Positions 12,616 through 62,247 of a DNA stretch of 64,000 nt are shown here, in pieces; the first letter of the stretch is position 1, and every line of letters begins with the position of its first letter. The position numbers and the translations under genes were made by a program. Under the pieces are notes generated by a model. That model was not told the origin of the DNA. It ran no database searches and saw only the letters and a list, made by a program, of their open reading frames with translations. The stretch covers positions 62,001 to 126,000 of IMG/VR virus record IMGVR_UViG_3300046616_000314. The stretch is one strand, 5' to 3'.

Positions 12616-13313
12616 TCTACCATCTTGAACCCATCGGTGATTGGTCTACGGTAGCTGATGAAGATCGCTTTAGCGGTTTTCTAGACGGCGACCGCCGAGC
12701 ACTACATAATCCAAAGTGGCGCGGAAACGTGCGCGATGCTTTCCGTAATACATCGCACCAATACAATTTCTTTTTCCTTCAAGACGTAAAAGATCGTCGT
12801 TCAACGTACACGGCTAAATCTCTATTTGAAGTGAGTGATTACCTTCTTGACTATACATTCGATATGTCAGTACCAGACTCAATCAACGTGGTGTTCACGA
12901 ACAATTTCGGTACTGATCGCGTCGCAATGACACCCTGGATCATTGCTCATAGAACGTCGCACACAATCCACGAACACTTGGATGATGGCAAGGGTGTAGA
13001 ATACGTTCAAATATTACACGATATGTGTATTCATATCAAAAATATCAATAATTGCCATCATCGATTGAATAAAGACTTGCGCCAAGTCTTGAAATTCCGC
13101 AGCGCAAAGAAACAGCTTACGCGATATGGCGAATTGTTTCATGAAATATTCGCTCAATACTTGATACAAGGAAGCGTGACATTCATCAAACTCCCAAACA
13201 CCGTTCCTGATGCGGATGTAATCAATTCGATTACTAGAAAATATGCACCGAAGATCAATGCCTCTATCAAGAGACTATTAGATCAATCTGTTGGTAACAT
13301 TTATATTCTTTAG
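12612..13313 (+). CDS. Hypothetical protein with atypical zincin-like motif
   Basis: MTPWIIAHRTSH and ELFHEIFAQYL. Confidence 0.6.
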   Translation: MIYHLEPIGDWSTVADEDRFSGFLDGDRRALHNPKWRGNVRDAFRNTSHQYNFFFLQDVKDRRSTYTAKSLFEVSDYLLDYTFDMSVPDSINVVFTNNFGTDRVAMTPWIIAHRTSHTIHEHLDDGKGVEYVQILHDMCIHIKNINNCHHRLNKDLRQVLKFRSAKKQLTRYGELFHEIFAQYLIQGSVTFIKLPNTVPDADVINSITRKYAPKINASIKRLLDQSVGNIYIL

Positions 13314-14200
13314 TAATAGCCGTCGTCTTCGCGAGGATCGAAGACGCCTGGAACATAGATGTCATCCAATGCCAGACGCTTGACCATTTTGACATTGTGC
13401 AGCAACGGTTCGCCATCGGCTCCATCGTCTTCTAGCTCTGTTCCCTGGACAAGGAAGATATCGCGCTTACCCTTAGCGGTAGCCGAGAACAAACCGTCCA
13501 TCGTTCCATTGAGCGTGTTTTCATTGATGCCGTCCCCGATTGCCCAACGTTGTTCTTCCATTTCCCAATCGGCATGATAGGCGGATACGCCCTTTTCCCA
13601 CACCGGATGACCTTCTTCGCGAGAGGCTAGGAAATTCTGTGAACGTTCATCATCGCGCCATAGACCGAAACGAACATAATATCTGCCTAGCATGTAGGCT
13701 TTGTTTTCAGGCGTGAACATTTGTTTGACATATCGTCTTGCCAAATCAAGTGCGCCAGGAAGCGGAATAGAGATCAGTTCGCCACGATATGTGCCGCCCG
13801 TGTCTACGATATTGCCATCTAGATCGAAGACAACGCGCAGATGATCAGGTTCAGCTTTTGAACCACGATTGGGGTGATATGAGATAGCCGGGACGTTGTA
13901 GATAGCAAAAGTGTTCTTGTGCTTGTCTAGGTATTTTTGGACGGTTACTTGCGTCCAGCTACGCCAGCCAAAATAAGCATAGAATGCAAGCCACTCAGGG
14001 TTTTGCATTACCTTGCCTTCAATGCGCTTTAAGTCTGCCCCAGAGGGTGGCCACGTCTCAGGGGTGAAATCGGGCTTGCCTTCGGCATCCATTTGCGAGG
14101 ATGTCTTGTAGTGGGGAGCTAAGTCCTGCCAATAAGAACGCCCAACGTCTGTCGGATGCTCGCGATAATACTTTTCTTCAAACAGTTCTGACAGGCGCAT
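13310..14200 (-). CDS. Putative R-S-E type ADP-ribosyltransferase-fold protein with capsid-targeting-like N-terminus
   Basis: MRLSELFE; YVRFG..RS.N, EKGVSAY and GADGEPLL spacing suggests an R-S-E triad. Confidence 0.5.
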   Translation of the reverse strand: MRLSELFEEKYYREHPTDVGRSYWQDLAPHYKTSSQMDAEGKPDFTPETWPPSGADLKRIEGKVMQNPEWLAFYAYFGWRSWTQVTVQKYLDKHKNTFAIYNVPAISYHPNRGSKAEPDHLRVVFDLDGNIVDTGGTYRGELISIPLPGALDLARRYVKQMFTPENKAYMLGRYYVRFGLWRDDERSQNFLASREEGHPVWEKGVSAYHADWEMEEQRWAIGDGINENTLNGTMDGLFSATAKGKRDIFLVQGTELEDDGADGEPLLHNVKMVKRLALDDIYVPGVFDPREDDGYY

Positions 14201-14203
14201 CCA

Positions 14204-15053: not shown

Positions 15054-15316
15054 CGGTATTCACAACCTTTGAACCAATGCGTTTGCCCAACTCTTTTAAG
15101 ATCGACTTTGAAAAGAGCAATGAACACACCGGTTGCAGGAACAGTGAGCGCAATTATTGCCAATGCCACCATATAGTCTTTATTGAAAATACAAGTTACG
15201 ATCAATCCAATCATAACCGAGAGCATGGTAGCATGAAATGAAGTATTCATATACAAATCGCGCAGAGCATCTTCCGCACAAGTACGAACATCTTCGATTT
15301 CATACGGTTTAGGCAT
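15050..15316 (-). CDS. Small membrane protein
   Basis: Two hydrophobic segments. Confidence 0.65.
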   Translation of the reverse strand: MPKPYEIEDVRTCAEDALRDLYMNTSFHATMLSVMIGLIVTCIFNKDYMVALAIIALTVPATGVFIALFKVDLKRVGQTHWFKGCEYR

Positions 15317-15548
15317 TGCTCATCCATTTCAACTTGAACAAGATCATGTCTTCTGCGTTCGCAAACTCGATGAAATCGTGAAAGTATCCTTCAGTATACC
15401 AATACCAACCCTTAGTCAAGTTAGTACGACACCAATCCTCAACGTCTTCATTGAGATACGTTTTTTCTATAAGTCTACCGTGACCTTTTGCAGCCGTTTG
15501 AACAAACATTGCATAGGTCAAATAAGAGGGAAGGTTGATCCTAAACAT
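15309..15548 (-). CDS. FKLK-motif family protein
   Basis: EDWCRTN..KGW; FANAEDMILFKLKW. Confidence 0.8.
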   Translation of the reverse strand: MFRINLPSYLTYAMFVQTAAKGHGRLIEKTYLNEDVEDWCRTNLTKGWYWYTEGYFHDFIEFANAEDMILFKLKWMSNA

Positions 15549-15798
15549 GATTCAATTCGTCAGGAATGTCGCGCGTGAGTGCAGAGACACAATAACTTAA
15601 ACCGGCTGCTACGGCGAAAAAACAGGTCACGATTAAAAGAATGGCGGTGTGCATCAAAGCCCAAATACCAATCGGAACAAATATAACCAAAAGAATGAAG
15701 CCGACACAATACTCACGAAGTTGTGTGCTGGCGGTAACTTCGGCTGTACGTCTTTTGTATTTAAGAGTTGCGTGTCTTAATTCTTGCATCGAAGCCAT
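15541..15798 (-). CDS. Small membrane protein
   Basis: Two hydrophobic segments. Confidence 0.6.
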   Translation of the reverse strand: MASMQELRHATLKYKRRTAEVTASTQLREYCVGFILLVIFVPIGIWALMHTAILLIVTCFFAVAAGLSYCVSALTRDIPDELNHV

Positions 15799-15799
15799 A

Positions 15800-16000
15800 T
15801 CAACACCACTTCAATTTGAAAGTGATCATTTCTTCGTCGCTATGGAAATTGAGAACTAAGTTTCCATTCACGTCTTCGAACGGAGGATCAATTTTGATAT
15901 CATTGTCGATAAGCCATGCAACAACGTCTGGGTTGATAGCCATAGTTGTTTTGTAATTCCAGATATGATGTTCTGGAACGATGACTTGTTTGTTGCTCAT
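15800..16000 (-). CDS. FKLK-motif family protein (minimal, 66 aa)
   Basis: FHSDEEMITFKLKWC*. Confidence 0.8.
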   Translation of the reverse strand: MSNKQVIVPEHHIWNYKTTMAINPDVVAWLIDNDIKIDPPFEDVNGNLVLNFHSDEEMITFKLKWC

Positions 16001-16344
16001 AAGTATTTCAACTTGAAAGCGGTATACGCTTCATCATTCGGAAAGATGAATTCGTTGTTGCCCGTCTTTTCGATTGTAGTTTTGACATCATGGGCTTTCA
16101 ACCACTGACGAAACTCATTAGTCAATTTCGGCGGATCAACCCAACGATGCTCAGGCGCGCTCATACGTGGGTCAGCCCATATATAAATGAGACCCAATGC
16201 CATATGAATTTTGTCTTCCCAACGCCAATAATCGGGAGGCGGAATACCCGTCATGTCCAATGTCCCATCGGTATTGGTTGAACTTTTCAAAAAATGTTTC
16301 CATTCGGTTTCGGAATACAGCCGAGGATAGGGATTCGTTTTCAT
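15997..16344 (-). CDS. FKLK-motif family protein
   Basis: FPNDEAYTAFKLKYL*. Confidence 0.8.
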   Translation of the reverse strand: MKTNPYPRLYSETEWKHFLKSSTNTDGTLDMTGIPPPDYWRWEDKIHMALGLIYIWADPRMSAPEHRWVDPPKLTNEFRQWLKAHDVKTTIEKTGNNEFIFPNDEAYTAFKLKYL

Positions 16345-16598
16345 GAGCCGAAACGCATCTTGAAGGCTACGGCATTTTCGAGCGTGGTGAAAGTAAGAAT
16401 GTATCGCCCACGTGCCGTTTCGGGTGCGCGATCAAAGAAATAAAAGAATTGGATTTCGCAGGCTTGCATCCACGCTGCCATGTCATCGGTAACAGGACCG
16501 CGCACGGCATTGCGAGGAATTTCCATACCAAATGGGAAAACATGCCCGTGGTGAGAGAATGCGGTGATCTCGAATAATGCAGGTTCAGTCATTGCCAT
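16341..16598 (-). CDS. FKLK-motif family protein
   Basis: FTTLENAVAFKMRFGS*. Confidence 0.75.
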   Translation of the reverse strand: MAMTEPALFEITAFSHHGHVFPFGMEIPRNAVRGPVTDDMAAWMQACEIQFFYFFDRAPETARGRYILTFTTLENAVAFKMRFGS

Positions 16599-16861
16599 TT
16601 CAACTTGAACATCACACGGTCTTCATCCGACGTGAAAGAAATCGAGGGATAATTCGACCAGCCGTTGTCATACGTCAGCCAAAACGTGGAATAACGAATT
16701 TCATTGTCTAGAAGATAGTCCAGCACTTTCGCCGAAAGCAACGGACGCATTAAGCCCGCGCCTCCGCGTTGTGTTACAAGTCGGAAAGCAATAGTCATGG
16801 CAAACGGATACCCGGTCTTGAATTCCGGTATATCCATGAACGCTTCAATCTTATCGGTCAC
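16589..16861 (-). CDS. FKLK-motif family protein
   Basis: FTSDEDRVMFKLKWQ*. Confidence 0.8.
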   Translation of the reverse strand: MTDKIEAFMDIPEFKTGYPFAMTIAFRLVTQRGGAGLMRPLLSAKVLDYLLDNEIRYSTFWLTYDNGWSNYPSISFTSDEDRVMFKLKWQ

Positions 16862-30983: not shown

Positions 30984-31712
30984 TTACGGGTGCATCAGCA
31001 GAGCGGACAGGGCGTCAACCGAGTCCTTCTTGCGACAGAACACATAGCCGCCCAGGTCCAGCGGAATGTAGTGAACATATTCGCCATCGACCAGCGGATA
31101 GGTCGGGTCATGCATGATGCCCGCGTGCAGCTTGTCCATGTTGGCGCGCTTGATGGCGCCGTACAGGTCATTCGGCTTCGGAGCCGCCAGGGTGATGCAG
31201 GTACCAAAGCCCAAGGCTTCGTTCTGCCACACGTCCAGCAGACCCTTCAGGGCTTCATCACCCTTGGCGATTTTGGCTTGGGCTTGATAGACCATCTGGT
31301 TCGCGACGTGACCGGCTTGAGCATAGCCCTTACCGACGTTCAGCGACGCCAGATCGGTACGCATAATCATGTAGAAATACGGCACGTAGGGAGCCAGCTT
31401 GCCGCTCAGAGCGAACATGATCTTGCGAATCATGTCTTGAGCCGTCTTATCGCCCGTGTCGGGACCGTTGGTTTGCGTGGCGTGATGCAGAATCGCCAGC
31501 GGAGCCGACAGTTCTTTGATCGCGGCGTTGATGTCAGCCAGAATGGCGCCATCTTCATCTTGATCGTCTTCGGGGGAAGTCAGCAGAGAGATAACCGTCG
31601 TCAGGTCCGCGAAATCCTCGTGGAATTTCTGCGTAACCTTATTACCCCACTTGGAGTAATTTTGCTTCCACCGCAGGGCGGTATTAATGACGGCGTTGCC
31701 TTGAATGCTCAT
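30984..31712 (-). CDS. PTH2-type peptidyl-tRNA hydrolase domain with an N-terminal extension
   Basis: YMIMRTDL..VGKGYAQAGHVA..W..GFGTCITL..AGIMHDPTY. Confidence 0.75.
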   Translation of the reverse strand: MSIQGNAVINTALRWKQNYSKWGNKVTQKFHEDFADLTTVISLLTSPEDDQDEDGAILADINAAIKELSAPLAILHHATQTNGPDTGDKTAQDMIRKIMFALSGKLAPYVPYFYMIMRTDLASLNVGKGYAQAGHVANQMVYQAQAKIAKGDEALKGLLDVWQNEALGFGTCITLAAPKPNDLYGAIKRANMDKLHAGIMHDPTYPLVDGEYVHYIPLDLGGYVFCRKKDSVDALSALLMHP

Positions 31713-34108: not shown

Positions 34109-34461
34109 GCTTCTGGGATATTTTCGATGTAGTCGTGAACACAGTCCGCGATATTTTCGGGGATGATAGAAATGTAGGGGCATTTCAACTTGAAGATCAT
34201 CGCGTCGTCTTCGGACGAAATTTCGATACTATACAGTTCGACATTCTGATAGAGATTGTATGCCACCGAATACTTGATGCCGCTGTTTTCCAGGGCATTT
34301 TTCATATCATCCATTTCGGCTTTGATGTCCGCATACCAGACATTTGCTTTCACCGAATCAATGGTGTGGTAGATGGTCGCCGTCATGTCGGAGCCGCCAC
34401 GCTCTCTGGCGCGCAAAGCCAGACTACTCGTTGTCTTGAAGTACAACAGGAAACGGATCAT
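34105..34461 (-). CDS. FKLK-motif family protein
   Basis: ISSEDDAMIFKLKCP. Confidence 0.7.
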   Translation of the reverse strand: MIRFLLYFKTTSSLALRARERGGSDMTATIYHTIDSVKANVWYADIKAEMDDMKNALENSGIKYSVAYNLYQNVELYSIEISSEDDAMIFKLKCPYISIIPENIADCVHDYIENIPEA

Positions 34462-34823
34462 AGCAGCGGGAACTTCATCTTGAGTGTGACAGCGTGTTCA
34501 TCGTCATAAATGAGGATGCCCCAATTGAGATATTTTTCTAGAAAATATTTTTCGTTGGGCGTCCTAGCTGACCGCTGCACCGAATAAAATCGAACGACGT
34601 TGTATTGGATTTCAGCACGGTTTTTTGACAGATAGTCCTCAAGCTCAAACAACATCCGTTTGTTTGGTTCAGGTAAAGTGTTTCCATAGAGAATGTCTGG
34701 AAACACTTGTGGAATGTGATTGTTGATAGGATCGGCATACAGTTTTTCGTGATCCTCAACCTCTTCAAGGTCATTGAATTCAATCAAATCCGCGAAATGC
34801 TCAATGACAACGAACAAATGCAT
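34458..34823 (-). CDS. FKLK-motif family protein
   Basis: IYDDEHAVTLKMKFP. Confidence 0.7.
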   Translation of the reverse strand: MHLFVVIEHFADLIEFNDLEEVEDHEKLYADPINNHIPQVFPDILYGNTLPEPNKRMLFELEDYLSKNRAEIQYNVVRFYSVQRSARTPNEKYFLEKYLNWGILIYDDEHAVTLKMKFPLL

Positions 34824-37732: not shown

Positions 37733-38172
37733 TTCAGTTTGAAAAGCATCATATCTTCTTCGACGGTAAACAACAATTTATATTCCAATTTTCTGGAATA
37801 TTTGTCGATAATTTCGTCAGTGGCGCAGGCTCGAAAATCAATTTCACCCTTCAACGAGTCGGCTTCTAGCCAATCGCTAATATAGGGGTGAAAATCGATA
37901 GGTGTTCCCCACCATTTTGTAAAATCACGATGTTCTTCGAACAGTTTCATAGAGGTTGTCGCATAGCCGCTCAGCGATAACCGATAAGCTGTTGACTGAT
38001 CAATGATGACTTCATGCTTGAACTTCATCATTTTGGCAGCATAGACTTGCCCTCTAGTCGGAGCGACTAAGAACTTAATATAGGTTCTCAACCACCGCAC
38101 GGGATGGTAGGCAACACAGAACGCAAGCCCGAGTAGGAACGTGCCTGTGATGATTTCCATCGCTAGGTTCAC
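37723..38172 (-). CDS. FKLK-motif protein with N-terminal membrane anchor
   Basis: IITGTFLLGLAFCVAY; FTVEEDMMLFKLKWF*. Confidence 0.75.
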   Translation of the reverse strand: MNLAMEIITGTFLLGLAFCVAYHPVRWLRTYIKFLVAPTRGQVYAAKMMKFKHEVIIDQSTAYRLSLSGYATTSMKLFEEHRDFTKWWGTPIDFHPYISDWLEADSLKGEIDFRACATDEIIDKYSRKLEYKLLFTVEEDMMLFKLKWF

Positions 38173-38633
38173 TCACCCATCCACTTCAGCTTGAACATCA
38201 CCATGTCTTCTTTTTTCTTGAAGTGCAGTTCGTAATGTCGTTCGTAATAAACGTCAGTGACTTTATGGTACTCTCGATAGGGGCGTTGATCGTCTCGTAC
38301 GACCAATTTAAATTTTGCGGGAATCCGAACGATGACCGCATACAATTTGGGTTCCGCTATCGAATGGGTTTCGCACCATGCGCGCACTTCATCCCGAACG
38401 TGAATTTTATAGTAGGCTCGATCTTTGTGAGGATTTTCGTAAAATTGCGTGATGTCTTGTGCCGCCCAAAGGCGATCAGCAATCTTTGTCGAACTGAACG
38501 CAATCTTGTTGCGATTCCAACGCCCAGGCTTTTTGAAATAACCATGAATGATCGGTGCGAACAGAAACAGTCCCGCGAACAGAAACCAACCAATCACTAA
38601 TGCAGTGGGTTTATCGCTCACTTCGACATCCAT
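38169..38633 (-). CDS. FKLK-motif protein with N-terminal membrane anchor
   Basis: LVIGWFLFAGLFLFAPII; FKKKEDMVMFKLKWM. Confidence 0.75.
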   Translation of the reverse strand: MDVEVSDKPTALVIGWFLFAGLFLFAPIIHGYFKKPGRWNRNKIAFSSTKIADRLWAAQDITQFYENPHKDRAYYKIHVRDEVRAWCETHSIAEPKLYAVIVRIPAKFKLVVRDDQRPYREYHKVTDVYYERHYELHFKKKEDMVMFKLKWMGE

Positions 38634-39046
38634 TTAAGCTTGAACATAACTATATCATCGGCGTTGCCGCATGTCACCCGATAATGATATCCCCACAGAT
38701 TCCGATGGAAGCTCAAGATTACTTTCTTCTTCAAATGGGTTTTATTCCATTCGTAGACGTGATCGTGAAATGGGATGGTGTGGAACTTTGACGTGCCGTG
38801 TTGGAGGCGCGACCACCATCTATGGTCACATAGATGGTCAATAACAGAGTCGTTAGGCTCACCAAGATAATCGGGCGTTTGGGGATCGATAATCAAGAAA
38901 TGCTTGGCGTGCTTGACTTTTAATTCAGGATTCCCAATTCGTTCGATAAGGGCGGCGAGACCATAGCCGACAGCCAAAGGCGAAATGGCAACCAAGAGGA
39001 AGCCACACGCCTTCAGCCCGATATCGAAGAACTGTTCAGGACTCAT
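38618..39046 (-). CDS. FKLK-motif protein with N-terminal membrane anchor
   Basis: GFLLVAISPLAVGYGLAALI; CGNADDIVMFKLKWM; start moved to the ATGA overlap. Confidence 0.75.
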   Translation of the reverse strand: MSPEQFFDIGLKACGFLLVAISPLAVGYGLAALIERIGNPELKVKHAKHFLIIDPQTPDYLGEPNDSVIDHLCDHRWWSRLQHGTSKFHTIPFHDHVYEWNKTHLKKKVILSFHRNLWGYHYRVTCGNADDIVMFKLKWMSK

Positions 39047-39435
39047 TTCACGGACAACGCTTGAAGTTCGGTTTCTTCCATATACGAACGGCGATAGACC
39101 GTGCGGAAGCGAATCTTGGAGCCGACACACAGTTCGCCCATGTACTGACCAGATTGGAAAGCATAACCACGTTCATCACCGGGACAACCGTTGATGCGTT
39201 GAGCGGTGACATCCGTGAGGGGTCCGCCTTTGAAATTGTAACCCTTGGCGTCCAGATCGGCGAAGTACGATTGGACCTGATTGGCGTCACGTTCCTCTTG
39301 CGACACCTTCGGAGTCGTCAGCGTTTCGCCGCGTTTGAAGGACGCGCCGATGCCCATACCGACCACCAAAACGATGAAAACAGCAATGATTCCGGCGGCG
39401 ACACGAGTGGGGATATTACCAAATCTACTAGACAT
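39043..39435 (-). CDS. Membrane-anchored hypothetical protein
   Basis: N-terminal hydrophobic helix; SD AGGAG. Confidence 0.65.
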   Translation of the reverse strand: MSSRFGNIPTRVAAGIIAVFIVLVVGMGIGASFKRGETLTTPKVSQEERDANQVQSYFADLDAKGYNFKGGPLTDVTAQRINGCPGDERGYAFQSGQYMGELCVGSKIRFRTVYRRSYMEETELQALSVK

Positions 39436-39444
39436 GCAGTTCTC

Positions 39445-40146
39445 CTATGATCCAGCTTTAAACTTAAACATGATTGCGTCTTCTTCGGTATCGAAGCTGA
39501 ACTTGAACAAAATGGCAGGAAGCTTCGTAACATCAGCTTCAAACGACCACTTACAGTTCAGGCTCGCCACCGTATTGAGGCAATGTTGCATCACGTCACA
39601 GTCGATTTCATCCATGCCACCCTTGGCGTGAACAATTACGGTATGCTTACGAGGATATTGGACGAAATTTTTGAAACGTCCACTCTTAAGATTCAACTCT
39701 TCTTTCGTGATTTCAACGTCGTACTCAAGATCAGCCCCGGTATTGGGGCAAATAGCCGTGGTGACGAACACATGATCAGCGGGCGCCATAGTAACGCCAT
39801 TGGAATTGGTGACAGATTGCGTATAGTATTCAACACCGTCATACCGATCATGACGACGGCTATGATACCTGACGCCATAGTGAAAGTCTTGACGAATGAA
39901 TTCACGAGTATACGCCCGGCGGAAGAGATACCGTCCAGGCATATGCATTAGATGATTAACCCGTCGCCGCAGTTCGCGCTTGTTCTTATCGATACCATCC
40001 GTGGCAAGACGAATATCACCACTGTTGATCGACACCATCAGCAGATCGGTGTCGTACATGGAATAGCAAGCCGCGAAGTATGCCGACGAGGCGTCAACGA
40101 ACCGCATTTCCATGTGAACGGGGTTGATGACGAGATACTTAGTCAT
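39445..40146 (-). CDS. FKLK-motif protein with long N-terminal region
   Basis: FSFDTEEDAIMFKFKAGS*. Confidence 0.75.
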   Translation of the reverse strand: MTKYLVINPVHMEMRFVDASSAYFAACYSMYDTDLLMVSINSGDIRLATDGIDKNKRELRRRVNHLMHMPGRYLFRRAYTREFIRQDFHYGVRYHSRRHDRYDGVEYYTQSVTNSNGVTMAPADHVFVTTAICPNTGADLEYDVEITKEELNLKSGRFKNFVQYPRKHTVIVHAKGGMDEIDCDVMQHCLNTVASLNCKWSFEADVTKLPAILFKFSFDTEEDAIMFKFKAGS

Positions 40147-40838
40147 TGCGCCGCCTTGAGCTTGAACATCACCGCATCATCTTCATTTTCAAAATGAAAA
40201 ATCATTTGCGGGTCAGCCATCAAATCGTAAGTCGCAGACAAAGACCATTTGTGAGTCACGGCACGGATTGCCGCGAGACGCATTTCGGGCGTTGCGAAAT
40301 CTGCACACGTGACCGGGTTCCGACGTTCATTTGGATCGAAATTCACAAAGCCCGTGGCGAATTCTTCCGGCGTCACCTTGCATGAGATCGAGGCGCCGTA
40401 ATGATCGTCTTCAAACGAACTTTGCGCGATGAAGAAATACAAATCTACGTCGCCATGGGCATGATGGTGCGTCACATGGCGATAATGATAATTCATTTTA
40501 TCGCCGTCGCATTCGCCTTTATATTCAATCGTGAAGCCCGGTTTCACCACTTGCATAGCCGTATTGAATCGAACGCGACCTTCACCACCCGCAAGAGCTT
40601 CGAAATAGCGTTTGCGATACTTGTTCTCAGCATAGCGTTGGAGATCAAGGGGGTTATCCGAGATCAGCCAGGACCAATCACCAATGATCTTGTGTTTGCC
40701 TTTGCCAATGATGACACCGTTTGCCTTTTTATAGTCGCGGGCGTGCTTCTTCATTGCGTGCTCATGCGACCGCGCCCGCACGATTTCATAACCGAGGCGG
40801 TTCGTTTTCATTACGATGAGGAAGTCACGCAAGCTCAT
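40143..40838 (-). CDS. FKLK-motif protein with long N-terminal region
   Basis: FHFENEDDAVMFKLKAAQ*. Confidence 0.75.
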   Translation of the reverse strand: MSLRDFLIVMKTNRLGYEIVRARSHEHAMKKHARDYKKANGVIIGKGKHKIIGDWSWLISDNPLDLQRYAENKYRKRYFEALAGGEGRVRFNTAMQVVKPGFTIEYKGECDGDKMNYHYRHVTHHHAHGDVDLYFFIAQSSFEDDHYGASISCKVTPEEFATGFVNFDPNERRNPVTCADFATPEMRLAAIRAVTHKWSLSATYDLMADPQMIFHFENEDDAVMFKLKAAQ

Positions 40839-41191
40839 TAGATTTCGACCCCTTCGGCACCGTCCAGGCGATCAAGGAAATCCCGCAGGGCTTCATAGTT
40901 CTTGTCACGGTCGAACGTGAATTCACCCATGGACGTACGGAACACGATCTTGTTGGCGATCACCACCTTGCTCCACTTCAGTAGGAAGTGAGCGGCGAAA
41001 TCCTTGCTATGCAGAAACACGTCGGGTTGCTTCGACTGATATTCCTGCACACGGGAGCGAACGTCTTGATCGCGATGTTGGTAGAGCCACGCGCGCACGG
41101 GATCATCATCACCACGCGGAACTTCATTCCGATAGGTGAACCGATAGACATGGTTCCGGTATTGGAAGCGGAGCTTCTTCGTCTCAGACAT
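40838..41191 (-). CDS. FKLK-motif family protein
   Basis: VRAWLYQ..LHSKDFAAHFLLKWS; start moved to MSETKK. Confidence 0.65.
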   Translation of the reverse strand: MSETKKLRFQYRNHVYRFTYRNEVPRGDDDPVRAWLYQHRDQDVRSRVQEYQSKQPDVFLHSKDFAAHFLLKWSKVVIANKIVFRTSMGEFTFDRDKNYEALRDFLDRLDGAEGVEI

Positions 41192-41426
41192 CTTTTTCAG
41201 TCTTTTCCACGGCGACCAAGCTCGAATTGCCATCCCGCGACGTGGCGATGACGGACGGGACCGGCGACAGACCCGAAAGTTCCATCGCCTTGAACAGGGC
41301 GTCATTGTCCAACGACACCTTGACGCCGCCAATCCACAGGTCGGAGACCCGCGAGCCGGGATAGCCGATGGTCACGTTCAGTTGGACGGTCTTGCCCAGC
41401 AATTCGGGGTTCATCTTCATCAACAA
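41184..41426 (-). CDS. Hypothetical protein
   Basis: SD AGGAG; coupled ORF. Confidence 0.6.
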   Translation of the reverse strand: MLMKMNPELLGKTVQLNVTIGYPGSRVSDLWIGGVKVSLDNDALFKAMELSGLSPVPSVIATSRDGNSSLVAVEKTEKDV

Positions 41427-41431
41427 ATCTC

Positions 41432-41803
41432 CTACAAAAATTTCAGCTTGAACAGAGCGGCATCTTCAGCTTCCACAAACCCAATTTGAATTCTATGGAA
41501 ACAATAATCAGACTCGACTATATTCGATTCACCTTTCGAAATCATATACGGAAGATCAATTTCTATATACGATTTTTCGTTTATGTCAAGATCGGGAATT
41601 TTCGTGTAATGAACCGGGCGGTCGAAAACACAATAATCTCCGATGAAATGCTCATCCATCCAATATTCTATGTCTTCAAAAAACCGGTTCGCCCGGCGCG
41701 CTTCGCGGTTTGGGTTGATAATCTTTTTGAATTGCTCATCCGTTAGTGTCACCCAATACGGGAGAACTTGGAGCACACGATAGGTCAGGCGCGTAACATC
41801 CAT
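41432..41803 (-). CDS. FKLK-motif family protein
   Basis: IEYWMDEHFIGDY; FVEAEDAALFKLKFL*. Confidence 0.8.
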   Translation of the reverse strand: MDVTRLTYRVLQVLPYWVTLTDEQFKKIINPNREARRANRFFEDIEYWMDEHFIGDYCVFDRPVHYTKIPDLDINEKSYIEIDLPYMISKGESNIVESDYCFHRIQIGFVEAEDAALFKLKFL

Positions 41804-42623: not shown

Positions 42624-43325
42624 ATGAAAAATATCATCGAAATTCGCTCCGCTGAAGGCGGGGCTGATTCAGCACTGTTCACAAAAGACCTTCTCAACGC
42701 ATATGTGCGTCTGTTCAACCGCAAGGGTTGAAAGTACCGCATCGTTCGTGAGAGACCGAGTGATGCAGGTTATAGCGAAATCGCCATCGAAGTTTCTGGC
42801 GATGATCTCACACCACTAAAAAATGAAGCCGGTGGACACCGAGTCCAGCGCGTGCCCGAAACGGAAGCCCGTGGGCGTGTTCACACGTCTACGGTAACTT
42901 GTGCCGTCTTAGATGTAGAAACTACAACGGACACCGATTCGATCTACTCGAAACGTAATCCCGATGATTTTGCCTATCGTTGGTATTCTGGCACAGGTAA
43001 AGGCGGACAAAAAAGAAACAAATCGCAATCGTGCTTAGAGCTAACTCATATTCCAAGTGGGTTATCTCAACAATCGCACGGTCGGTCACGGGAAGTGAAT
43101 TCTACACAAGCCATGACTGCCCTGATCGCAGATTTGGATTCCATGGCAAAAAACGCCAAAGCATCAATTGTTGCGGAAGATCGCAAAGGTCAAATCGGAT
43201 CGGGTATGCGCGGTGATAAACGCCGCACGTATCGTTTCCAAGATGGAACAATTACCGATCACGTCACCGGGCGTACTATTACAACGAAGGCATTTTCTAA
43301 GGGTAACTTAGACCTTCTTTGGTAA
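42624..43325 (+). CDS. prfA: Class I peptide chain release factor (RF1-like, no N-terminal domain 1) with in-frame UGA at codon 36 (42729-42731)
   Basis: ATG 42624 with SD; IEIRSAEGGADSALF..NRKG*KYRIV..NEAGGHRVQRVPETEARGRVHTS (PxT motif)..GTGKGGQ..RRTYRF..ITDH, all in one frame. Confidence 0.85.
42736..42770 (+). promoter_or_regulatory. Hairpin immediately 3' of the in-frame UGA (candidate readthrough stimulator)
   Basis: ACC-GCATC-GTTCG..CGAGT-GATGC-A-GGT: 13 pairs including two G-U, with one bulge. Confidence 0.5.
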
Positions 43326-43991
43326 TCGTCCCATGATCCATCCACTAGCGAGATAACTTTCCAACTCGCTAGTGGATACCATCATCGATTTCGTTTGGTT
43401 GTTTATCCATTTGCGTCCTGCATTGAAGGCGGGTTTTCCAAAATTAAAATGGGATGAACCAGATAGTTTTCGACTATGCGTGGCTCGCCATTCTGGTGGA
43501 TGAATTTTTCCGAACATCGGATTTTTATCACCCGTAAACCTGCCCTTTTTGCTTTGGGACATTTTATCACGAGATTCAGTAGAATGTGACTTTCCATACA
43601 TATGATGGTGGGTTCCACTGATTTTGCTTAAGCTATCAGAAGAATGTTTCTTACCGTAAAAGGGATTGTTTTTACCCATTGTAGATTTTTTTGCGGTATT
43701 GATAAATCTATCATATGCTCTAGCAGTAGGAGCATTTTCTTTCATACGACATAGCGCGTAGAACATTTTCGAACGAGCTTGTGGATTTTTTAATTTAGTC
43801 AGCAATACGTGTGCAATATAATGCTCTCTGGTCGTAAGATACACTAAGTTGTCTTTAGTATTAGGACCACCAAGGCTTTTTGGAATTATGTGATGGCGTT
43901 CTAAACCAGGAGCTTTAACCCGGTCCAATCGAATTGCATTATCTATAATTTTAGTATAGAGTTTTTTATACTTTATTTTTAGCCAAATCAT
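43308..43991 (-). CDS. HNH homing endonuclease with NUMOD3 DNA-binding repeats
   Basis: ERHHIIPKSLGG..DNLV.LT.REHYIAH; NPFYGKKHS, HMYGKSHS, NPMFGKIH repeats. Confidence 0.9.
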   Translation of the reverse strand: MIWLKIKYKKLYTKIIDNAIRLDRVKAPGLERHHIIPKSLGGPNTKDNLVYLTTREHYIAHVLLTKLKNPQARSKMFYALCRMKENAPTARAYDRFINTAKKSTMGKNNPFYGKKHSSDSLSKISGTHHHMYGKSHSTESRDKMSQSKKGRFTGDKNPMFGKIHPPEWRATHSRKLSGSSHFNFGKPAFNAGRKWINNQTKSMMVSTSELESYLASGWIMGRLPKKV

Positions 43992-49580: not shown

Positions 49581-49892
49581 TTAGACTCGGAGTTTAAATT
49601 CGACCATGCTTTCATCGTCGGGAAACACCACGATTATATGAGATTGTGTCTTCTCAAAATCATAATGATGCCATAGTTCGAATAGATCAGCGGTATTAAG
49701 CTTGTTGTAGACATCAATCATTTTGGATTGTTGTTCAGCGCATTCAGTCGTGCCCTTGTGGACAAACTTGAAAATTCGAGAAGGAAATTCGAATATTCGG
49801 CAGCGTTGGGCGGGCTCGATATACCGGAGCCCCCAATGCATAGCGCCCATGGCAGGCTTAGCCTTTGTGAAATCCATCGGGGGAAATATCAT
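49581..49892 (-). CDS. FKLK-motif family protein
   Basis: VFPDDESMVEFKLRV*. Confidence 0.75.
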   Translation of the reverse strand: MIFPPMDFTKAKPAMGAMHWGLRYIEPAQRCRIFEFPSRIFKFVHKGTTECAEQQSKMIDVYNKLNTADLFELWHHYDFEKTQSHIIVVFPDDESMVEFKLRV

Positions 49893-56238: not shown

Positions 56239-56451
56239 TTATCTGAACTTCAACTTGAATAGCAATGCATCTTCTTCTGTACGAAACCATATTGTTTTCC
56301 GTACACACTCGTCATCAATCAAGTCGGTTTGTTCCTTATATTCCATTGTGGGATTCTTCTTAAAATATGCGCGAAGTCTCTGGCGCAACACTACGGATGC
56401 AGCCAGCGAATAATCTACTTCAATGGTTACGGAATGTTGATAGTCCTTCAT
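56239..56451 (-). CDS. FKLK-motif family protein
   Basis: WFRTEEDALLFKLKFR*. Confidence 0.8.
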   Translation of the reverse strand: MKDYQHSVTIEVDYSLAASVVLRQRLRAYFKKNPTMEYKEQTDLIDDECVRKTIWFRTEEDALLFKLKFR

Positions 56452-56714
56452 CCGAACTTCAGCTTGAAAATCATGGCGATCTCTTCGTCATCGAAATAGA
56501 ACGCTTGGGTTCGAATTCCGGTTGTATACATATTATTGTCGCGATGGTCGTATTCCCACATAACGTCTTCGGACAACGCACGGAACCATTCGGTGATAGG
56601 GTCATAGTCGTCGGGGTGATTGAGCGTGACCACGACTTTGCAAAGCCATGGATCATTTTTCTGGATCGCACTGAAACTACGGTCGGCTACGCCGTCTATG
56701 ACCAATTCTTTCAT
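56448..56714 (-). CDS. FKLK-motif family protein
   Basis: ITEWF; FYFDDEEIAMIFKLKFG*; start moved to the ATGA overlap. Confidence 0.8.
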   Translation of the reverse strand: MKELVIDGVADRSFSAIQKNDPWLCKVVVTLNHPDDYDPITEWFRALSEDVMWEYDHRDNNMYTTGIRTQAFYFDDEEIAMIFKLKFG

Positions 56715-57055
56715 TGGAATTTCAACTTGAACATCAGAAAGTCGTCTTCGCTTTCGAACACGAATTTCTTTTTGCAGCATTTTTCCAGTTTGCGGAGTGC
56801 GTAACCAACAGTTGTCGGCATAGCAGACCAATTGCCTACCGTTCCTGCCAGATGGTCGGTGAGACGCTGATAGAAGGCGCGGGTTTCCTCATCACATTGC
56901 GAATAGTTGTCGCTATGGTTGTTGAGTCCGAGTTTGTGGAACGGAAGATCGATTTCGATGATGTTGGGGTTTCCGCGCATACGAAGATGCAATCCGTTCA
57001 CCTTGCCACAGGCAACGGGATAGACCACACCAGCAGTACGCGGAACAAATGTCAT
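56711..57055 (-). CDS. FKLK-motif family protein
   Basis: GNW; FVFESEDDFLMFKLKFQ*. Confidence 0.8.
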   Translation of the reverse strand: MTFVPRTAGVVYPVACGKVNGLHLRMRGNPNIIEIDLPFHKLGLNNHSDNYSQCDEETRAFYQRLTDHLAGTVGNWSAMPTTVGYALRKLEKCCKKKFVFESEDDFLMFKLKFQ

Positions 57056-57369
57056 TTGCGATACTCGAATTTAATTTTGAACAACGCGCATTCATCAACA
57101 TTCTCAAACGCAAACGTCTTGAGAATGATATCATTTCGCCCCGGTCCCCGTCGTGCGCGTAGAGCCGAAACTTCTGTGCCATGATTGCGATAGGCGATCC
57201 AGGCGCCCTTCACGTGCTCCATATGAGCGGACAGCTTGCCGTAAATCTCTTCATCGGGTACGCCCCACGGAATCAAGACATCGACGGTGAGCGCATTCAC
57301 AAAGACGTACTCAGCCGCACGCTCGCATGACATGATCCAGCCACCGTGGATCAGCATGGGGCAGACCAT
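57052..57369 (-). CDS. FKLK-motif family protein
   Basis: KGAW; FAFENVDECALFKIKFE. Confidence 0.8.
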   Translation of the reverse strand: MVCPMLIHGGWIMSCERAAEYVFVNALTVDVLIPWGVPDEEIYGKLSAHMEHVKGAWIAYRNHGTEVSALRARRGPGRNDIILKTFAFENVDECALFKIKFEYRK

Positions 57370-57758
57370 TTCATACGGAAAAGCATACGATCCTCTTCGC
57401 TGAAGAAAATCAGACTATACACGGAATAGCGATTAAAACGCTCGCAAAGTTCTCTTCCATCCCGAAAATGGTCAAGATAAGTTTCGCTGAAGACCGGAGT
57501 ATAGCCAAGGGTTGTTTCACACCATTCCCTGATGTTGTCGTGCAGATTCGTGCGCTGTTCACCCGTTGGTTTGCCATCGGCGGCGAGCACGACCTTGGGA
57601 CCGAACATCGAGCGATTCACCGCATGATCGCGATTATGGTATTCCCAACGAATCAAGTACAATTGAGCTTGGAAGTGGGCTGTCCAGCCTGAACGAATGG
57701 AGCCTGTCTGCACGTTTCCCGTGCGTCCATCGACAAAATGTAAAGGCAGCATGGACAT
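57351..57758 (-). CDS. FKLK-motif family protein
   Basis: IREWCETTLG; FFSEEDRMLFRMKWS. Confidence 0.8.
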   Translation of the reverse strand: MSMLPLHFVDGRTGNVQTGSIRSGWTAHFQAQLYLIRWEYHNRDHAVNRSMFGPKVVLAADGKPTGEQRTNLHDNIREWCETTLGYTPVFSETYLDHFRDGRELCERFNRYSVYSLIFFSEEDRMLFRMKWSAPC

Positions 57759-57990: not shown

Positions 57991-57995
57991 ATTAC

Positions 57996-58023
57996 ACTCT
58001 ACTATACTCTAAAATTCTGTCAA
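57996..58023 (-). promoter_or_regulatory. sigma70-like promoter
   Basis: TTGACA-N16-TAGAGT. Confidence 0.6.
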
Positions 58024-58027
58024 GCAC

Positions 58028-58514: not shown

Positions 58515-58545
58515 CCCAAACGCATACTAAAATGCGCGGAAGGTG

Positions 58546-59925
58546 TCAATATTTTCGTTTTTGGAGCAACGCCGAATAATTGACCGGATGGCGCACTAGT
58601 TCTTTTTCCAATTCGCTAACGAATTTTTTGATCGCCAGCTTCCAACGCTTCGGGGCATTGTCTTTCAGCGCACTAAAGAAACTACTAGTGAAACCAACGT
58701 GACCCTTCTCGGCTTCCGTCAATCCAACGAACACATTGATAGCATCCCGCAAGGTCGGAGGGGCAGGAAGATAAACGCTGTATTTTTTAATCATTTCCAA
58801 CAGATCATAGAAGTCAGCGATTGCCGAAATAATTTGCGGATCGAATTCAACCGGAGAGGTCAAATAAGGTTCCGCAACACTTCCGTCCGTAGGATGTTTC
58901 TTCTTTTGATCGGGATGGCGCAACACGTTGTATTGGATCATGTGTTGCATTTCATGATGCAAGGTTTTCTTGATACGATCCAATGCAATTTCCAACTCAC
59001 CTAACTTCGCTCCGTTAGGATAATTCTTTAGCGCACCGTTGGTTGGCTGAATGACAATAGAATTCATATCAGGATAATATGCAGCCATGGTCGTTTCGTT
59101 TTCGGGTTTCCACTGCATACCGATGAAGAAATAGCCTTTCCGCACTGGGGCTAGTTTCTGATAGCTTAGAGGTAAGTCTGTAATATCAAATGTGAATGTT
59201 TTGAGATCAAATTTCTCTGGATAATCTTCTTTCGGAATTCTGACGCCATGTTTCTTACATACGTCTTGGAATTCCTGCCACAGAGCCGCATTCTCTTTGG
59301 TCTGGAACATCGGTGTCAGGTCGCGCCATTGATCCCGAGCGTGCCACAAAATCTGTGTGACGACCCAATGATAAGCGAGGACCATAGCAAGAGGCGGGAC
59401 AGCGATCACGCCTTCCATTAGCACGTTGGTATGGGCTTCCAAAGCTTCGGTGAACGTCGCAGCATTTTTAAATTTTTCAAAATGGGGATCGTAGGTAACG
59501 GTTGCCTCGATTTCGTGGCGCCCTGCCAGGATTTGAAGACAGATGCGGTGATGCCCTTCCATGACCCAGTACATACCGTTGGGTAGGGCGACCAATTCAG
59601 GAAGCGGAGCGGTATCCCAATGACTTAGAACTTTTTGGAGATTTTTCAGCCCAACACCGTTTTGATCTTGCGTAACGAGCTTTTCAACCGGAATGAGTTG
59701 GGTCTTGTGGGTTTGGGTTACGATTTCCTCATAGGGAGCCTTACCCATGAGCACCTTCAAATACTCTGGGTTCATGTCTTTCTCGTCGTGGTTCAAACCG
59801 AATGAAGAGAAAGGAATGTCAATATCTTCCCAATTTTTGGTTTCGCGATTGGAATGTGTTTGTGCAAAGAAACGCAGTAACTTAAGCAGGTTCTTTTGTT
59901 CGTCTGAAGTGAAAGGCTTAAGCAT
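58546..59925 (-). CDS. Two-domain protein: ParB/Srx-like domain + zincin (HExxH) domain
   Basis: IPVEKL..WVMEGHHRI..EIEATV; TLHHEMQHMIQ..YLTSPVEFD. Confidence 0.7.
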   Translation of the reverse strand: MLKPFTSDEQKNLLKLLRFFAQTHSNRETKNWEDIDIPFSSFGLNHDEKDMNPEYLKVLMGKAPYEEIVTQTHKTQLIPVEKLVTQDQNGVGLKNLQKVLSHWDTAPLPELVALPNGMYWVMEGHHRICLQILAGRHEIEATVTYDPHFEKFKNAATFTEALEAHTNVLMEGVIAVPPLAMVLAYHWVVTQILWHARDQWRDLTPMFQTKENAALWQEFQDVCKKHGVRIPKEDYPEKFDLKTFTFDITDLPLSYQKLAPVRKGYFFIGMQWKPENETTMAAYYPDMNSIVIQPTNGALKNYPNGAKLGELEIALDRIKKTLHHEMQHMIQYNVLRHPDQKKKHPTDGSVAEPYLTSPVEFDPQIISAIADFYDLLEMIKKYSVYLPAPPTLRDAINVFVGLTEAEKGHVGFTSSFFSALKDNAPKRWKLAIKKFVSELEKELVRHPVNYSALLQKRKY

Positions 59926-61510
59926 CTTCGGTACCTGTCAATCCATAACGAGAAAGTTGTAATATCTGTTCGGCACGTTCGTCTTTGCCATAGGTGAGAC
60001 GGAGGACACCTAAAACTTTAGAGCGAATTTGCGCACTACGAGAACTAATATGAGCGTATTCAGTGAGAATATCATTGAAATACGCCAGAGTAATGTAATC
60101 ATGCTTATCGATGATCACTGAAGCAACTGACCGGAGCCAACTATACTCATCGTCTCGCAATAGTAATTCGCGAGCAAATAGTTCTGGAATAGTATTGCTA
60201 TGAATAAAACTATGAAGCATTTGCGCATACTCGCGCGGATTCGTGATATTCGAGATAGCACGGGTTTTGACAACATTCGGGAAGAATCGAATGAATGTCG
60301 AATGATCCTTCAGAAATTTTAACGAATCAAATTCGAAATCGGCTCCACATTCAACCGCGAGTGTTTTAAATCTGCCCGTCTTCTGACTATTGTCCAGCAC
60401 TTCTTTTGCAAATGTATCGAGTAATTGCACGTATTGTTGGCGTGTAATAAGCGGTTTCATGAAACGGGTCATGATCCAAGGTTCTTCAGCCACGGCGGCG
60501 AAGATTTCTTCTGGTGATACGTTAGGTAGGTAATACGGATAGATGACGTTGACTGCCCACGAATCTTTCAACCACTGTTGAATAATGGTCGGCACGTTTT
60601 TCCAATTGAATTGGAGGTTGTCTAGGAATGTATCATCGGAACGGAAATCACCAATGTAATCCATGATCTGAGTGTTCTCAGTCTCATTGGTATTACCTTT
60701 ACGATTATTAAGAAACTTGAAGAATGAATTTTGGTTCTTCAACCAGATGTCATATAGCGATGGGGTTCTTTTGGGAGCGGGTGTGTTGTGAATGACTTCG
60801 ACAACCCGGAAGGATTTTTTACTAAAGAACAACGCTTGGTTGGGCTCGTTTTTGTGAATGATCCCATAGCCAGGATCAACCAGACCGGCGTATCCAAGTT
60901 GACTGAAGATACGTGACCACCGAGTTGTCATCTTGGCTTGTACGGCAGATTTTTCCGCTGTTTTCTTATCGAGTGCAAACATGCGAGTGATGTTGAACAT
61001 CTTACCCGCCCACGTGTCTGTAGAAGCGTTATATTCGCCATCATCGATAATGTGTTCATCGTCATAACCGAGAGCCTTCAGCTTCTCGATATCTTCGTTC
61101 ATGTCGCGTTCTGTATACAGTTCAAAATCCAGCATCTTGCCGGTTGGTTCCAGAACGTAAATGTATGGACGCTCGCCAGCGAAAGGAACTTTCACTTCTA
61201 CAGCAGAAGAATTTTTCAAGACATAATTGACGGGGTAGGCGTAGATACCCAAAGGCGTACCATAACCGTATGTAGGGTTGATCCCAATCTTAGGTCCGCG
61301 AGCATTGTGGACATGACCTTTGGCTCTTACGCCATCTTCGGTCTTTTTAACTTTTTGATTGCCTGCATTGTTGGCAGATAGAACGCCGACATCGGCAGTG
61401 AACGATAGAAACACGTCTTTGTCTGTGTACTTGCGCAGTTGTTTCATAACCGGAGCCTTCTGATTTTGTTCAGGATTCCGGCGGGCTTCGATCAGTTCAT
61501 GAAAACGCAT
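59918..61510 (-). CDS. RRNP-family protein 4 (putative packaged ART-fold effector)
   Basis: MRFHELIEARRNP; start moved to the TAATG overlap at 61510. Confidence 0.7.
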   Translation of the reverse strand: MRFHELIEARRNPEQNQKAPVMKQLRKYTDKDVFLSFTADVGVLSANNAGNQKVKKTEDGVRAKGHVHNARGPKIGINPTYGYGTPLGIYAYPVNYVLKNSSAVEVKVPFAGERPYIYVLEPTGKMLDFELYTERDMNEDIEKLKALGYDDEHIIDDGEYNASTDTWAGKMFNITRMFALDKKTAEKSAVQAKMTTRWSRIFSQLGYAGLVDPGYGIIHKNEPNQALFFSKKSFRVVEVIHNTPAPKRTPSLYDIWLKNQNSFFKFLNNRKGNTNETENTQIMDYIGDFRSDDTFLDNLQFNWKNVPTIIQQWLKDSWAVNVIYPYYLPNVSPEEIFAAVAEEPWIMTRFMKPLITRQQYVQLLDTFAKEVLDNSQKTGRFKTLAVECGADFEFDSLKFLKDHSTFIRFFPNVVKTRAISNITNPREYAQMLHSFIHSNTIPELFARELLLRDDEYSWLRSVASVIIDKHDYITLAYFNDILTEYAHISSRSAQIRSKVLGVLRLTYGKDERAEQILQLSRYGLTGTEDA

Positions 61511-62247
61511 TAAATTTTCTCCGCAACGGAGAAGAAATTGCTTCCATCTTTTTTGAGTAATTTCAGATCGGTCTTGAGCATACGCCAGCATTCGGAAGGA
61601 TGGATCGTCCCCGCATGGGCGACGTGCATACCACGGTTGATCGCTTCGATCTTCAAATGATCGGGCATCTTCTTCAGCACACGTTTGCCGCCTTGAGCGA
61701 AGTAAGCGTACTCGCCATCAAGAACACGTTTGCGTTGATTTTCGGTCATGCTCCAACCGATGTAATCGTACAGTTGTCTACCGGCATAATCTGATTGCGG
61801 CAGAGAACATTTATAACCAACGGTGACGGGATGCCCATAGCGACCCATTTGTGTGATGGGCTCAGAATTGTGGCTATAAAATTCACCGATGGAATCTTCG
61901 TCAGGCTGCACGTCTACGAGATCGGCGCCTTTGATAACGAACACATATCCATAAGGATCGGTTCGCATATCGTCTTTGAAATCGCCAGCGGCTTCTTGCA
62001 TGGCATGAGTAAAATTGCCACCAAGGGCATACATGATGGCGTATGCGATATCGGATGTAATATAGACGCGCCCGGCAACAGGAGCAAGCATACCCTTGCC
62101 TTGGGTCTCGCGACCTTTCAGACCTTCGGTAGCAACGACATTGGCTGCACGAGTCGATGACGTGCCGTGATAGTACGTTTTTGCACGAACGTTATCGTCC
62201 GGTGCAGCCTCGTCAATTTCGGTACCAAATAATTCGTGAAAACGCAT
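61510..62247 (-). CDS. H-Y-type ADP-ribosyltransferase-fold protein with capsid-targeting-like N-terminus
   Basis: MRFHELF..IDE; YYHGTS..EGL..VYITSDIAYAIMYA..YVFVI..PDED. Confidence 0.65.
   Translation of the reverse strand: MRFHELFGTEIDEAAPDDNVRAKTYYHGTSSTRAANVVATEGLKGRETQGKGMLAPVAGRVYITSDIAYAIMYALGGNFTHAMQEAAGDFKDDMRTDPYGYVFVIKGADLVDVQPDEDSIGEFYSHNSEPITQMGRYGHPVTVGYKCSLPQSDYAGRQLYDYIGWSMTENQRKRVLDGEYAYFAQGGKRVLKKMPDHLKIEAINRGMHVAHAGTIHPSECWRMLKTDLKLLKKDGSNFFSVAEKI

Follow-up and report, generated by a model that had tools for sequence, protein, structure and literature searches.

A common N-terminal leader on proteins of four families in an uncultivated huge phage and its similarity to the capsid-targeting sequence of phage T4

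The internal proteins of T-even phages have only a capsid-targeting sequence (CTS) in common (PMC3012670). In phage T4, this short N-terminal leader is carried by IPI, IPII, IPIII, Alt, and gp24 and is cut off by gp21, the prohead protease. Its residues 4 and 7 direct targeting, and its residues 8 and 10 direct cleavage (PMC9026906). The leaders in the T4 record are MKTYQEFIAE for IPII and IPIII, MAKINELLRE for gp24, MELITELFDE for Alt, MLKEQLIAE for gp22, and MNEPQLLIE for gp21. When the Glu at the T4 cut site is changed to Asp, cleavage is lost but targeting persists. In this study, seven genes (P1 to P7) whose products begin with a leader of a similar kind were analyzed in a 64-kb stretch of DNA, hereafter the window, which comprises bases 62,001–126,000 of the 561,116-bp Joint Genome Institute (JGI) metagenome contig Ga0495668_0000005 (IMGVR_UViG_3300046616_000314). 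Approximately 8 kb of the contig beyond the window was also included. The window contains the genes for both ribonucleotide reductase (RNR) subunits and for a synthetase similar to isoleucyl-tRNA synthetase (IleRS) as well as many small open reading frames (ORFs), and no close relative of it was found among deposited phages. Because the contig is large and carries the RNR and IleRS-like genes, and because it has no close deposited relative, the window is part of an uncultivated huge phage.

Similar to the T4 CTS, the leader in the window is a short N-terminal sequence on unrelated, fast-evolving proteins. It follows M-[KR]-x-aromatic/hydrophobic...hydrophobic-[IL]-x-E, with a Glu at its end. 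Its likeness to the CTS and to the gp21 cleavage pattern, which had been proposed in an earlier note on this DNA, held when it was checked against the T4 record and PMC9026906. In both systems, moreover, an ADP-ribosyltransferase (ART) is found among the cargo, a (T/A)ATAAATA element is associated with the genes, and the genes are scattered away from the head cluster. Different from the T4 leader of 10 residues, however, the leader in the window mostly has 8 residues (MRxxELxE). In addition, the element in the window abuts the ATG, and the cargo ARTs are ART-PolyVal-like, on the H-Y-D/E side, whereas those of the T4 Alt type are R-S-E. Finally, the genome of 561 kb that hosts the leader genes is uncultivated.

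The propeptides of the giant phages phiKZ, 201phi2-1, and SPN3US, which have gp21-like proteases, are also cut from head and ejection proteins after a Glu at a short motif. They are inferred to target the prohead and are found on paralogues with identical N-termini (PMC5694885). Different from the leader in this study, which is short, of the (L/I)-x-E type and T4-like, they have motifs of the form S/A/G-x-E or A-x-E, and the majority of them are longer than 100 residues. Polyvalent proteins with ART-PolyVal (Tox-ART-HYD2) domains (Iyer et al., 2017, PMC5512222) are predicted to be packaged and injected. Similar to them, P2 possesses an ART-PolyVal domain followed by a GNAT-like region, and its N-terminal domain matches thousands of giant polyvalent proteins. 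Polyvalent proteins contain 2–15 domains per polypeptide, whereas in the window the domains are spread over separate genes for proteins of 245–629 amino acid residues, every one of which bears a leader. A second region, the weak GNAT-like one, is found in P2 only, and the other six are single-effector proteins. Neither a metallopeptidase (MPTase) nor a MuF/portal fusion was seen in the window, and no such leader is described in the searched text of PMC5512222. The Dar proteins of phage P1 (DarA, DarB, DdrB, and Hdf; the phage is not to be confused with protein P1 of this study) are likewise head-packaged, injected accessories, of which the N-terminal regions and processing are needed for incorporation (PMC5512222, PMC9024508). 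They have no sequence relation to the proteins in the window and differ by their larger targeting regions and the ordered co-dependence of their components.

The leader and the four protein families

Based on sequence comparison, the seven genes belong to four families: family A, which consists of the paralogues P3, P4, P5, and P6 with identities of 28–34%, and the families of P1, P2, and P7. Family alignments were built from database homologues of P7 (A2), P1 (A3), the N-terminal domain of family A (A4), and ART-PolyVal (A5). All profile–profile comparisons between the four families with hhalign gave probabilities of homology below 3%. When P1 and P7 were compared with family A, only residues 1–10 were aligned, and the best segment of P1 against the ART-PolyVal profiles was the leader itself. 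In addition, BLASTP found no match between P7 and P2, and hhalign detected no homology between the family profiles and T4 Alt. As judged from these comparisons, the leader is the only element common to the families. The results support the reading of the leader as a portable N-terminal module on proteins without detectable homology to each other.

The leader is located at the extreme N-terminus of all seven proteins and ranges from 8 to 13 residues. Translations of all seven ORFs agreed with the N-termini and positions given previously. The (L/I)-x-E pattern ends at residue 8 in P1 and P3–P6, while LKE ends at residue 9 in P2 and IDE at residue 13 in P7. Every ATG, GTG, or TTG start with an ORF of at least 50 residues in the window was scanned for the leader. 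The pattern ^MR..E[LI].E was found only in P1, P3, P4, P5, and P6, to which P2 and P7 are looser fits, and a looser regular expression added only one ORF, a doubtful one of 68 residues. Thus, a search for further MRxxE(L/I)xE genes, which had been suggested earlier, found none in the window beyond these five; more were found elsewhere in IMG/VR, as described below. The start of P6 was placed at 61510 and not at the first in-frame ATG of the mechanical ORF (61591) because of the JGI call and the TAATG overlap with the stop codon of P7. In the structural models, the first 10 residues were of low confidence, with predicted local distance difference test (pLDDT) values for this block of 62 (family A) and only 49 for P1, which is consistent with a flexible, exposed leader.

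P7 and P6, which are adjacent yet unrelated, have their first six residues, MRFHEL, in common, with the synonymous differences CAC/CAT and TTA/CTG. Unlike P6, its paralogues start with MRAFEL or MRAYEI.

The motif ahead of the start codons

The window contains exactly five copies of the 8-mer ATAAATAA, all of which stop 3 nt short of an ATG, namely that of P1, P2, P4, P5, or P7 (Table 1). The number of copies was not above chance; their positions are the signal. At all five genes, the gap between ATAAATA and the ATG is exactly 4 nt and a Shine-Dalgarno (SD) sequence is absent, whereas other genes in the window have GGA or AGGA at the usual distance. P3 and P6 are without the motif and start within TAATG overlaps. 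The motif positions and these overlaps confirm the earlier statement that five of the genes directly follow the motif and that the other two are TAATG-coupled. The sequence observation, which includes both the leader and the placement of the motif, is far from chance.

The late promoter of T4 is TATAAATA at positions -13 to -6, of which the first base varies in relatives (PMC1524935). ATAAATA was also proposed as a late promoter before structural genes of the jumbo phages CBB and GAP32 (PMC5259590). Among the five copies in the window, only that of P7 is the full T4 box. In the T4 record, the late box is located 25–35 nt upstream of the ATG and is followed by an SD sequence. The designation of the motif as a late promoter is tentative: its core matches the late promoter of the T4 family, but its position next to the ATG is unlike that in T4. 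If the motif is a promoter, the transcript would have its first base at the AUG or no more than one nucleotide away, and the mRNA would be leaderless. This reading would explain why the spacing is fixed, why SD sequences are missing, and why the coupled genes are without the motif. The main alternative to a promoter is a translational operator. A scan for sigma-70 promoters and terminators found them at chance level only, and no factor similar to gp55, which reads the late box in T4, was seen in the window and the approximately 8 kb of the 561-kb contig next to it. The 459-residue ORF adjacent to P6 (Table 1) is probably co-transcribed with P6, and its membership in the leader-gene system is uncertain.

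Table 1. Leader genes, motif copies and an adjoining ORF in the window
Feature	Position	Strand	Description
P1	13310..14200	(-)	296 aa; leader MRLSELFE; uncharacterised family, no ART evidence
P2	44644..46230	(+)	528 aa; leader MRYRDLLKE; ART-PolyVal at aa 30-238, then weak GNAT-like region
P3	50841..52529	(-)	562 aa; family A paralogue; leader MRAFELFE; start TAATG-coupled to P4 stop
P4	52529..54418	(-)	629 aa; family A paralogue; leader MRAFELFE
P5	54429..56219	(-)	596 aa; family A paralogue; leader MRAYEILE
P6	59918..61510	(-)	530 aa; family A paralogue; leader MRFHELIE; TAATG-coupled to P7 stop
P7	61510..62247	(-)	245 aa; leader MRFHELFGTEIDE; YYHGT, VYxT, and QPDEDS motifs
ORF	58546..59925	(-)	459 aa; overlaps P6 end; no leader
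ATAAATAA	14204..14211	(-)	before P1 ATG; last TAA doubles as stop codon of upstream ORF
ATAAATAA	44633..44640	(+)	before P2 ATG
ATAAATAA	54422..54429	(-)	before P4 ATG; overlaps P5 stop region
ATAAATAA	56223..56230	(-)	before P5 ATG
ATAAATAA, here TATAAATAA	62251..62258	(-)	before P7 ATG

Cargo proteins and their relatives in other large phages

P2 matched the Pfam family ART-PolyVal (PF18760) with an E-value of 3e-19, and its H40, the catalytic His of strand 1, is invariant. Judged by its sequence, P2 is certainly a member of the ART-PolyVal family. The invariant residues of the P7 family are H27, Y62, and D116-E117-D118. Its matches to known ARTs were weak, as only 3 of 45 members matched PARP, with E-values of at least 0.007, and the E-value for Tpt1 chains was 0.2. 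P7 is probably an ART of the H-Y-D/E type.

No annotation of family A was obtained from searches of Pfam, PHROGs, NCBIfam, and PDB profiles. Its N-terminal domain was modelled on residues 1–265 of P6 with a pLDDT of 86.2. When this model was compared with the PDB by Foldseek, the sole match with an E-value below 1e-3 was chain B of 9k3a, cyanophage A4's pre-ejectosome (E = 4.5e-4, probability 1.0, 190 columns, TM-score 0.33, identity 12%). Among predicted viral structures (BFVD), the E-values of its matches were 1.3e-4 and 3.7e-3 for ART-PolyVal-like proteins and 0.012 for a PARP catalytic domain, with TM-scores of 0.27–0.5, and cyanopodophage proteins were matched as well. In family A, the strand equivalent to the YHGT strand of ART-PolyVal reads VSFT, without the strand-1 His, and the invariant residues are K74, G76, P79, T85, P86, H219, E222, and Q225. 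The N-terminal domain of family A is therefore predicted from its model to adopt an ART-PolyVal-like fold, the chemistry of which is uncertain because the strand-1 His is missing and other residues are invariant instead. The earlier note had ascribed ART-like motifs to all seven proteins; this is certain for P2, probable for P7, and limited to the level of the fold for P3–P6, and no support for it was found for P1.

The ART-PolyVal class is predicted to be packaged in heads (PMC5512222, PMC9503650). The A4 pre-ejectosome is a complex that was solved inside the capsid and is ejected on infection (PMC12002296). It is similar to the leader proteins in that its chain B matches family A structurally. 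However, A4 is a podovirus and the protein is a very large multidomain one. These likenesses support the view that the cargo classes would fit head-packaged, injected proteins.

Homologues of the four families were almost all metagenomic, and many were from contigs of 200–850 kb. In each of the four families, homologues from other large uncultivated phages bear the same kind of leader. Their N-termini read phi-x-E-[AK]-RRNP-x-x-NPK in family A, phi-x-E-M-A-x-P followed by YYHGT in the P7 family, phi-x-E-D in the P1 family, and MR[KN][YFW]I[DN][IL][ILV]xE in stand-alone ART-PolyVal proteins. Many of the leaders read M-[KR]-x-aromatic-x-x-hydrophobic-[IL]-x-E, like MKTYQEFIAE of T4, and the T4-like variants included MKTFKQFVFE (with MATP next), MRFKEFLAE (with MAAP next), MYSFKQYLAE, and MRKYIDILNE. 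The leader was strongly enriched in the homologues over 910 control ORFs from the flanking DNA. In family A, for example, it was found in 59 of 118 homologues and in 75 of the 910 control ORFs (p = 2e-26); the control ORFs that matched encode additional proteins, of different kinds, that also have the leader.

Two scans of IMG/VR were performed. In the first, ATAAATAA-N3-ATG-CG... was combined with M-R-x-x-E-phi-x-[ED], both imposed, and gave 18 matches including P1, P4, and P5, every one of which is at the start of an ORF. Thirteen ORFs were complete and ranged from 77 to 686 residues, while five, including copies of P4 and P5, run past the fetched stretch. Their cargo was diverse and included proteins with FYHGT, LYHFT, and YRGFSG motifs. 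In the second scan, only MR was imposed after the motif. Most matches were due to chance, and approximately half of the at least 22 real ORFs among the matches listed have a leader that had not been imposed. Moreover, single contigs carry several leader genes, which are mostly mutually non-homologous (one pair, in locus L085, is related by BLAST), and many of the leader genes on such contigs are preceded by ATAAATA, 4 nt, and ATG. As far as can be judged from these matches, the motif-plus-leader cassette is mobile and is located before unrelated cargo in many IMG/VR contigs.

On the 376-kb contig IMGVR_UViG_3300026302_000005 (locus L055), three proteins without mutual BLAST similarity all start with MRL[FL]DL[FL]E. 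Their ORFs start at 6274 (+), 10001 (+), and 11922 (-), the last in the reverse-complemented locus. One of the three is a homologue of P7, which itself starts with MRFHELFG in the window. The agreement among the three suggests homogenisation of the leaders within a genome. The genome-specificity of the leader subtype (8-mer versus 10-mer) was not significant, with p = 0.26 from only three informative loci.

Among GenBank phages, megablast and tblastn found no match to P4, P1, or P0054. The sole match to P7 was gp205 of Tunturiibacter phage Tunturi_5, in which the domain is internal to a multidomain protein of 853 residues. The depositors named gp205 an ART toxin, and Pfam does not call it an ART. 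Besides the P7-like domain, this protein of an isolated 309-kb phage (L002, 11500–14061) comprises a second domain of the YHS type, a ParB-like DGHHR motif, and a GNAT at the C-terminus, and a leader like those of P1–P7 is absent from its N-terminus. Similarly, P0076 had a match in an uncultured phage of 735 kb, in which the domain is again at an internal position and no leader is present.

Explanations of the leader and other features of the window

Very probably, P1–P7 are a co-regulated gene set defined by a portable N-terminal tag. That the set is a system for head-packaged, injected effectors similar to that of the T4 CTS has, in our judgment, a chance slightly better than even. In such a system, the genes would be transcribed late from the T4-type NATAAATA element to a leaderless mRNA that starts at or next to the AUG. 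The leader would then bind the prohead core or scaffold, by which the protein would be built into the prohead, and a gp21-type prohead protease would cut after (L/I)-x-E. The mature proteins would stay in the head, enter the next host with the DNA, and modify components of the host or of defence. P2 and probably P7 are candidates for ADP-ribosylation and the C-terminal part of P2 for acetylation, and no particular activity is proposed for P1 or for family A, which is His-less and ART-PolyVal-like. A packaged set is consistent with the published predictions of packaged ARTs and polyvalent domains (PMC5512222, PMC9503650). From the earlier description of a co-regulated, packaged effector arsenal, the CTS-like leader, the shared motif, and the fitting cargo are retained; P1 is not detectably ART-like, P3–P6 are without the strand-1 His, and the distance between the motif and the ATG is unlike that in T4.

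Several findings weigh against packaging. The motif differs from the T4 box in its distance from the ATG and in the lack of an SD sequence, and its role could instead be that of a translational operator or enhancer. If positions are numbered as in T4, transcription would start on the U of the AUG, and a shift of 1 nt must be assumed. Neither a prohead protease nor head genes were seen in the window and the additional 8 kb of the contig. The leader genes are located among small, early-looking genes and away from structural genes, an objection that is tempered by the alt and ip genes of T4, which are likewise not beside structural genes. The Foldseek TM-scores of family A were low (0.33–0.48) though the probabilities were high. 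For P1, no significant match was found either by sequence (Pfam, PHROGs, NCBIfam, and PDB profiles) or by structure, and its model (pLDDT 78) had a best PDB E-value of 0.12. Finally, a phi-x-E-[AK]RR(N/S) block stays in place where the family A domain is internal, as in P0021 (at residue 245), P0085, P0040, and P0081. Because the phi-x-E-[AK]RRNP block is kept at internal positions, part of the family A leader is, by sequence, domain sequence, the separate tag is only approximately the first five residues, and conservation of the block does not imply cleavage.

These findings bear on the possibility that the leader is a peptide whose targeting or regulatory role concerns a destination other than the head, such as a membrane or secretion signal, a signal for import into a phage compartment, or a timing degron, with ATAAATAA-N3-ATG serving as a translational operator or enhancer like the T4 RegA sites that overlap start codons. 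The motif is where such an operator would be placed and has no SD sequence next to it, and the early-looking neighbourhood, the lack of head genes and protease in the sequence examined, and the domain-intrinsic part of the family A leader would also suit a non-head destination. However, the leader fits the T4 CTS and its cleavage pattern position by position, it is acidic and amphipathic and not a hydrophobic signal peptide, and its cargo belongs to classes for which a place inside the capsid has been predicted or shown (PMC5512222). We regard a non-head destination as rather unlikely. The conserved start could also reflect a need of the mRNA, for example for translating leaderless transcripts, with no function of the peptide. 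The strict distance between motif and ATG, the invariant ATG and CGY codons, the missing SD sequences, and the recurrence of the same DNA cassette in other contigs are in line with such a need. Different from what it would predict, however, the residues are kept while codons 3–8 vary synonymously across the seven genes (GAA CTG/TTG/CTA/ATC/TTA; TTT/TTC; GAA/GAG), P3 and P6 have the leader despite being motif-less and TAATG-coupled, homologues with ordinary SD sequences or GTG starts, including one with both, still have the leader, and the leaders of other lineages differ in DNA but follow the same peptide pattern. Because of the synonymous variation and because the leader is kept without the motif and in the homologue with an SD sequence and a GTG start, these results point to selection acting on the leader as a peptide, and a need of the mRNA alone is quite improbable.

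It is very improbable that the seven proteins are divergent paralogues, or resemble each other by chance, and that their N-terminus was inherited without being a signal. P3–P6 are true paralogues, so that four of the seven leaders are not independent, and an ART-PolyVal-like fold may be common to P2 and family A. Nevertheless, no profile–profile similarity beyond the leader was found among P1, P7, P2, and family A, the model of P1 has no ART-like or other significant match, and unrelated proteins elsewhere bear the leader. Moreover, the leader follows the N-terminus and not the domain in fusion proteins. For instance, in P0021, which has 566 residues and is encoded on an ENA contig of 71 kb, ART-PolyVal (aa 1–240) is naturally fused to a family A domain (aa 245–510). 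The leader of P0021 is at the N-terminus ahead of ART-PolyVal and the family A domain is second; thus, the leader tracks the N-terminus, not one domain. The domain junction of P0021, ...AILE-ARRSS..., fits the (L/I)-x-E pattern and could be an internal processing site between the domains.

Packaging of many cargos by one tag is a principle known from T4. The form of this leader, the fusion of promoter and ATG, the cargo families, and the spread of the cassette in uncultivated large phages appear to be undescribed in the literature searched. If the leader is a signal for capsid targeting and cleavage, sequence alone would suffice to list the first-strike proteins of huge uncultivated phages, including those of families such as the two of four in this study that are without any annotation and whose function could not otherwise be guessed. 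The principle of T4 would also be extended to phages more than three times larger, candidate tags would be available for loading foreign proteins into phage heads, and a testable link would exist between T4-type late promoters and leaderless translation. Tentatively, and with more doubt than confidence, the late box, the 4 nt, the AUG, and the CTS-like leader may together be a mobile 5' module that makes any ORF late, leaderless-translated, packaged, and injected. Because the cassette recurs in uncultivated large phages with dozens of cargos that are unrelated, it would then be a sequence-only marker for predicting the injected proteome of phages that are not amenable to cultivation.

Elsewhere in the window, positions 27–6837 and 30984–31712 encode the large and small subunits of a class I RNR, the IleRS-like synthetase, which is 928 residues long and shares 37% identity with bacterial IleRS, as well as a PTH2-like protein. 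Such genes of translation and nucleotide metabolism are of the kind typical of huge phages. No tRNA gene was found within the window. At 42624–43991, pieces similar to a release factor (RF) adjoin a gene for a NUMOD3 homing endonuclease on the opposite strand. The JGI gene calls there include a 157-residue product with Pfam RF-1 and a 35-residue product with a weak PCRF match, and the pieces may represent a split or interrupted RF gene.

In addition, a C-terminal motif of approximately [F/I]-x-[S/D]-E-E-D-A-x-[M/L/A]-F-K-L-K-[W/F], followed by 0–3 residues, ends at least 19 of about 130 crude ORFs of the window. These ORFs are located at 7898–10641 (+), 15309–16861 (-), 34458–34823 (-), 37723–41803 (-), 49581–49892 (-), and 56239–57758 (-). 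Either these ORFs are small paralogues from one large family, or their products have a C-terminal module in common; the gene that follows them often begins in an ATGA overlap.

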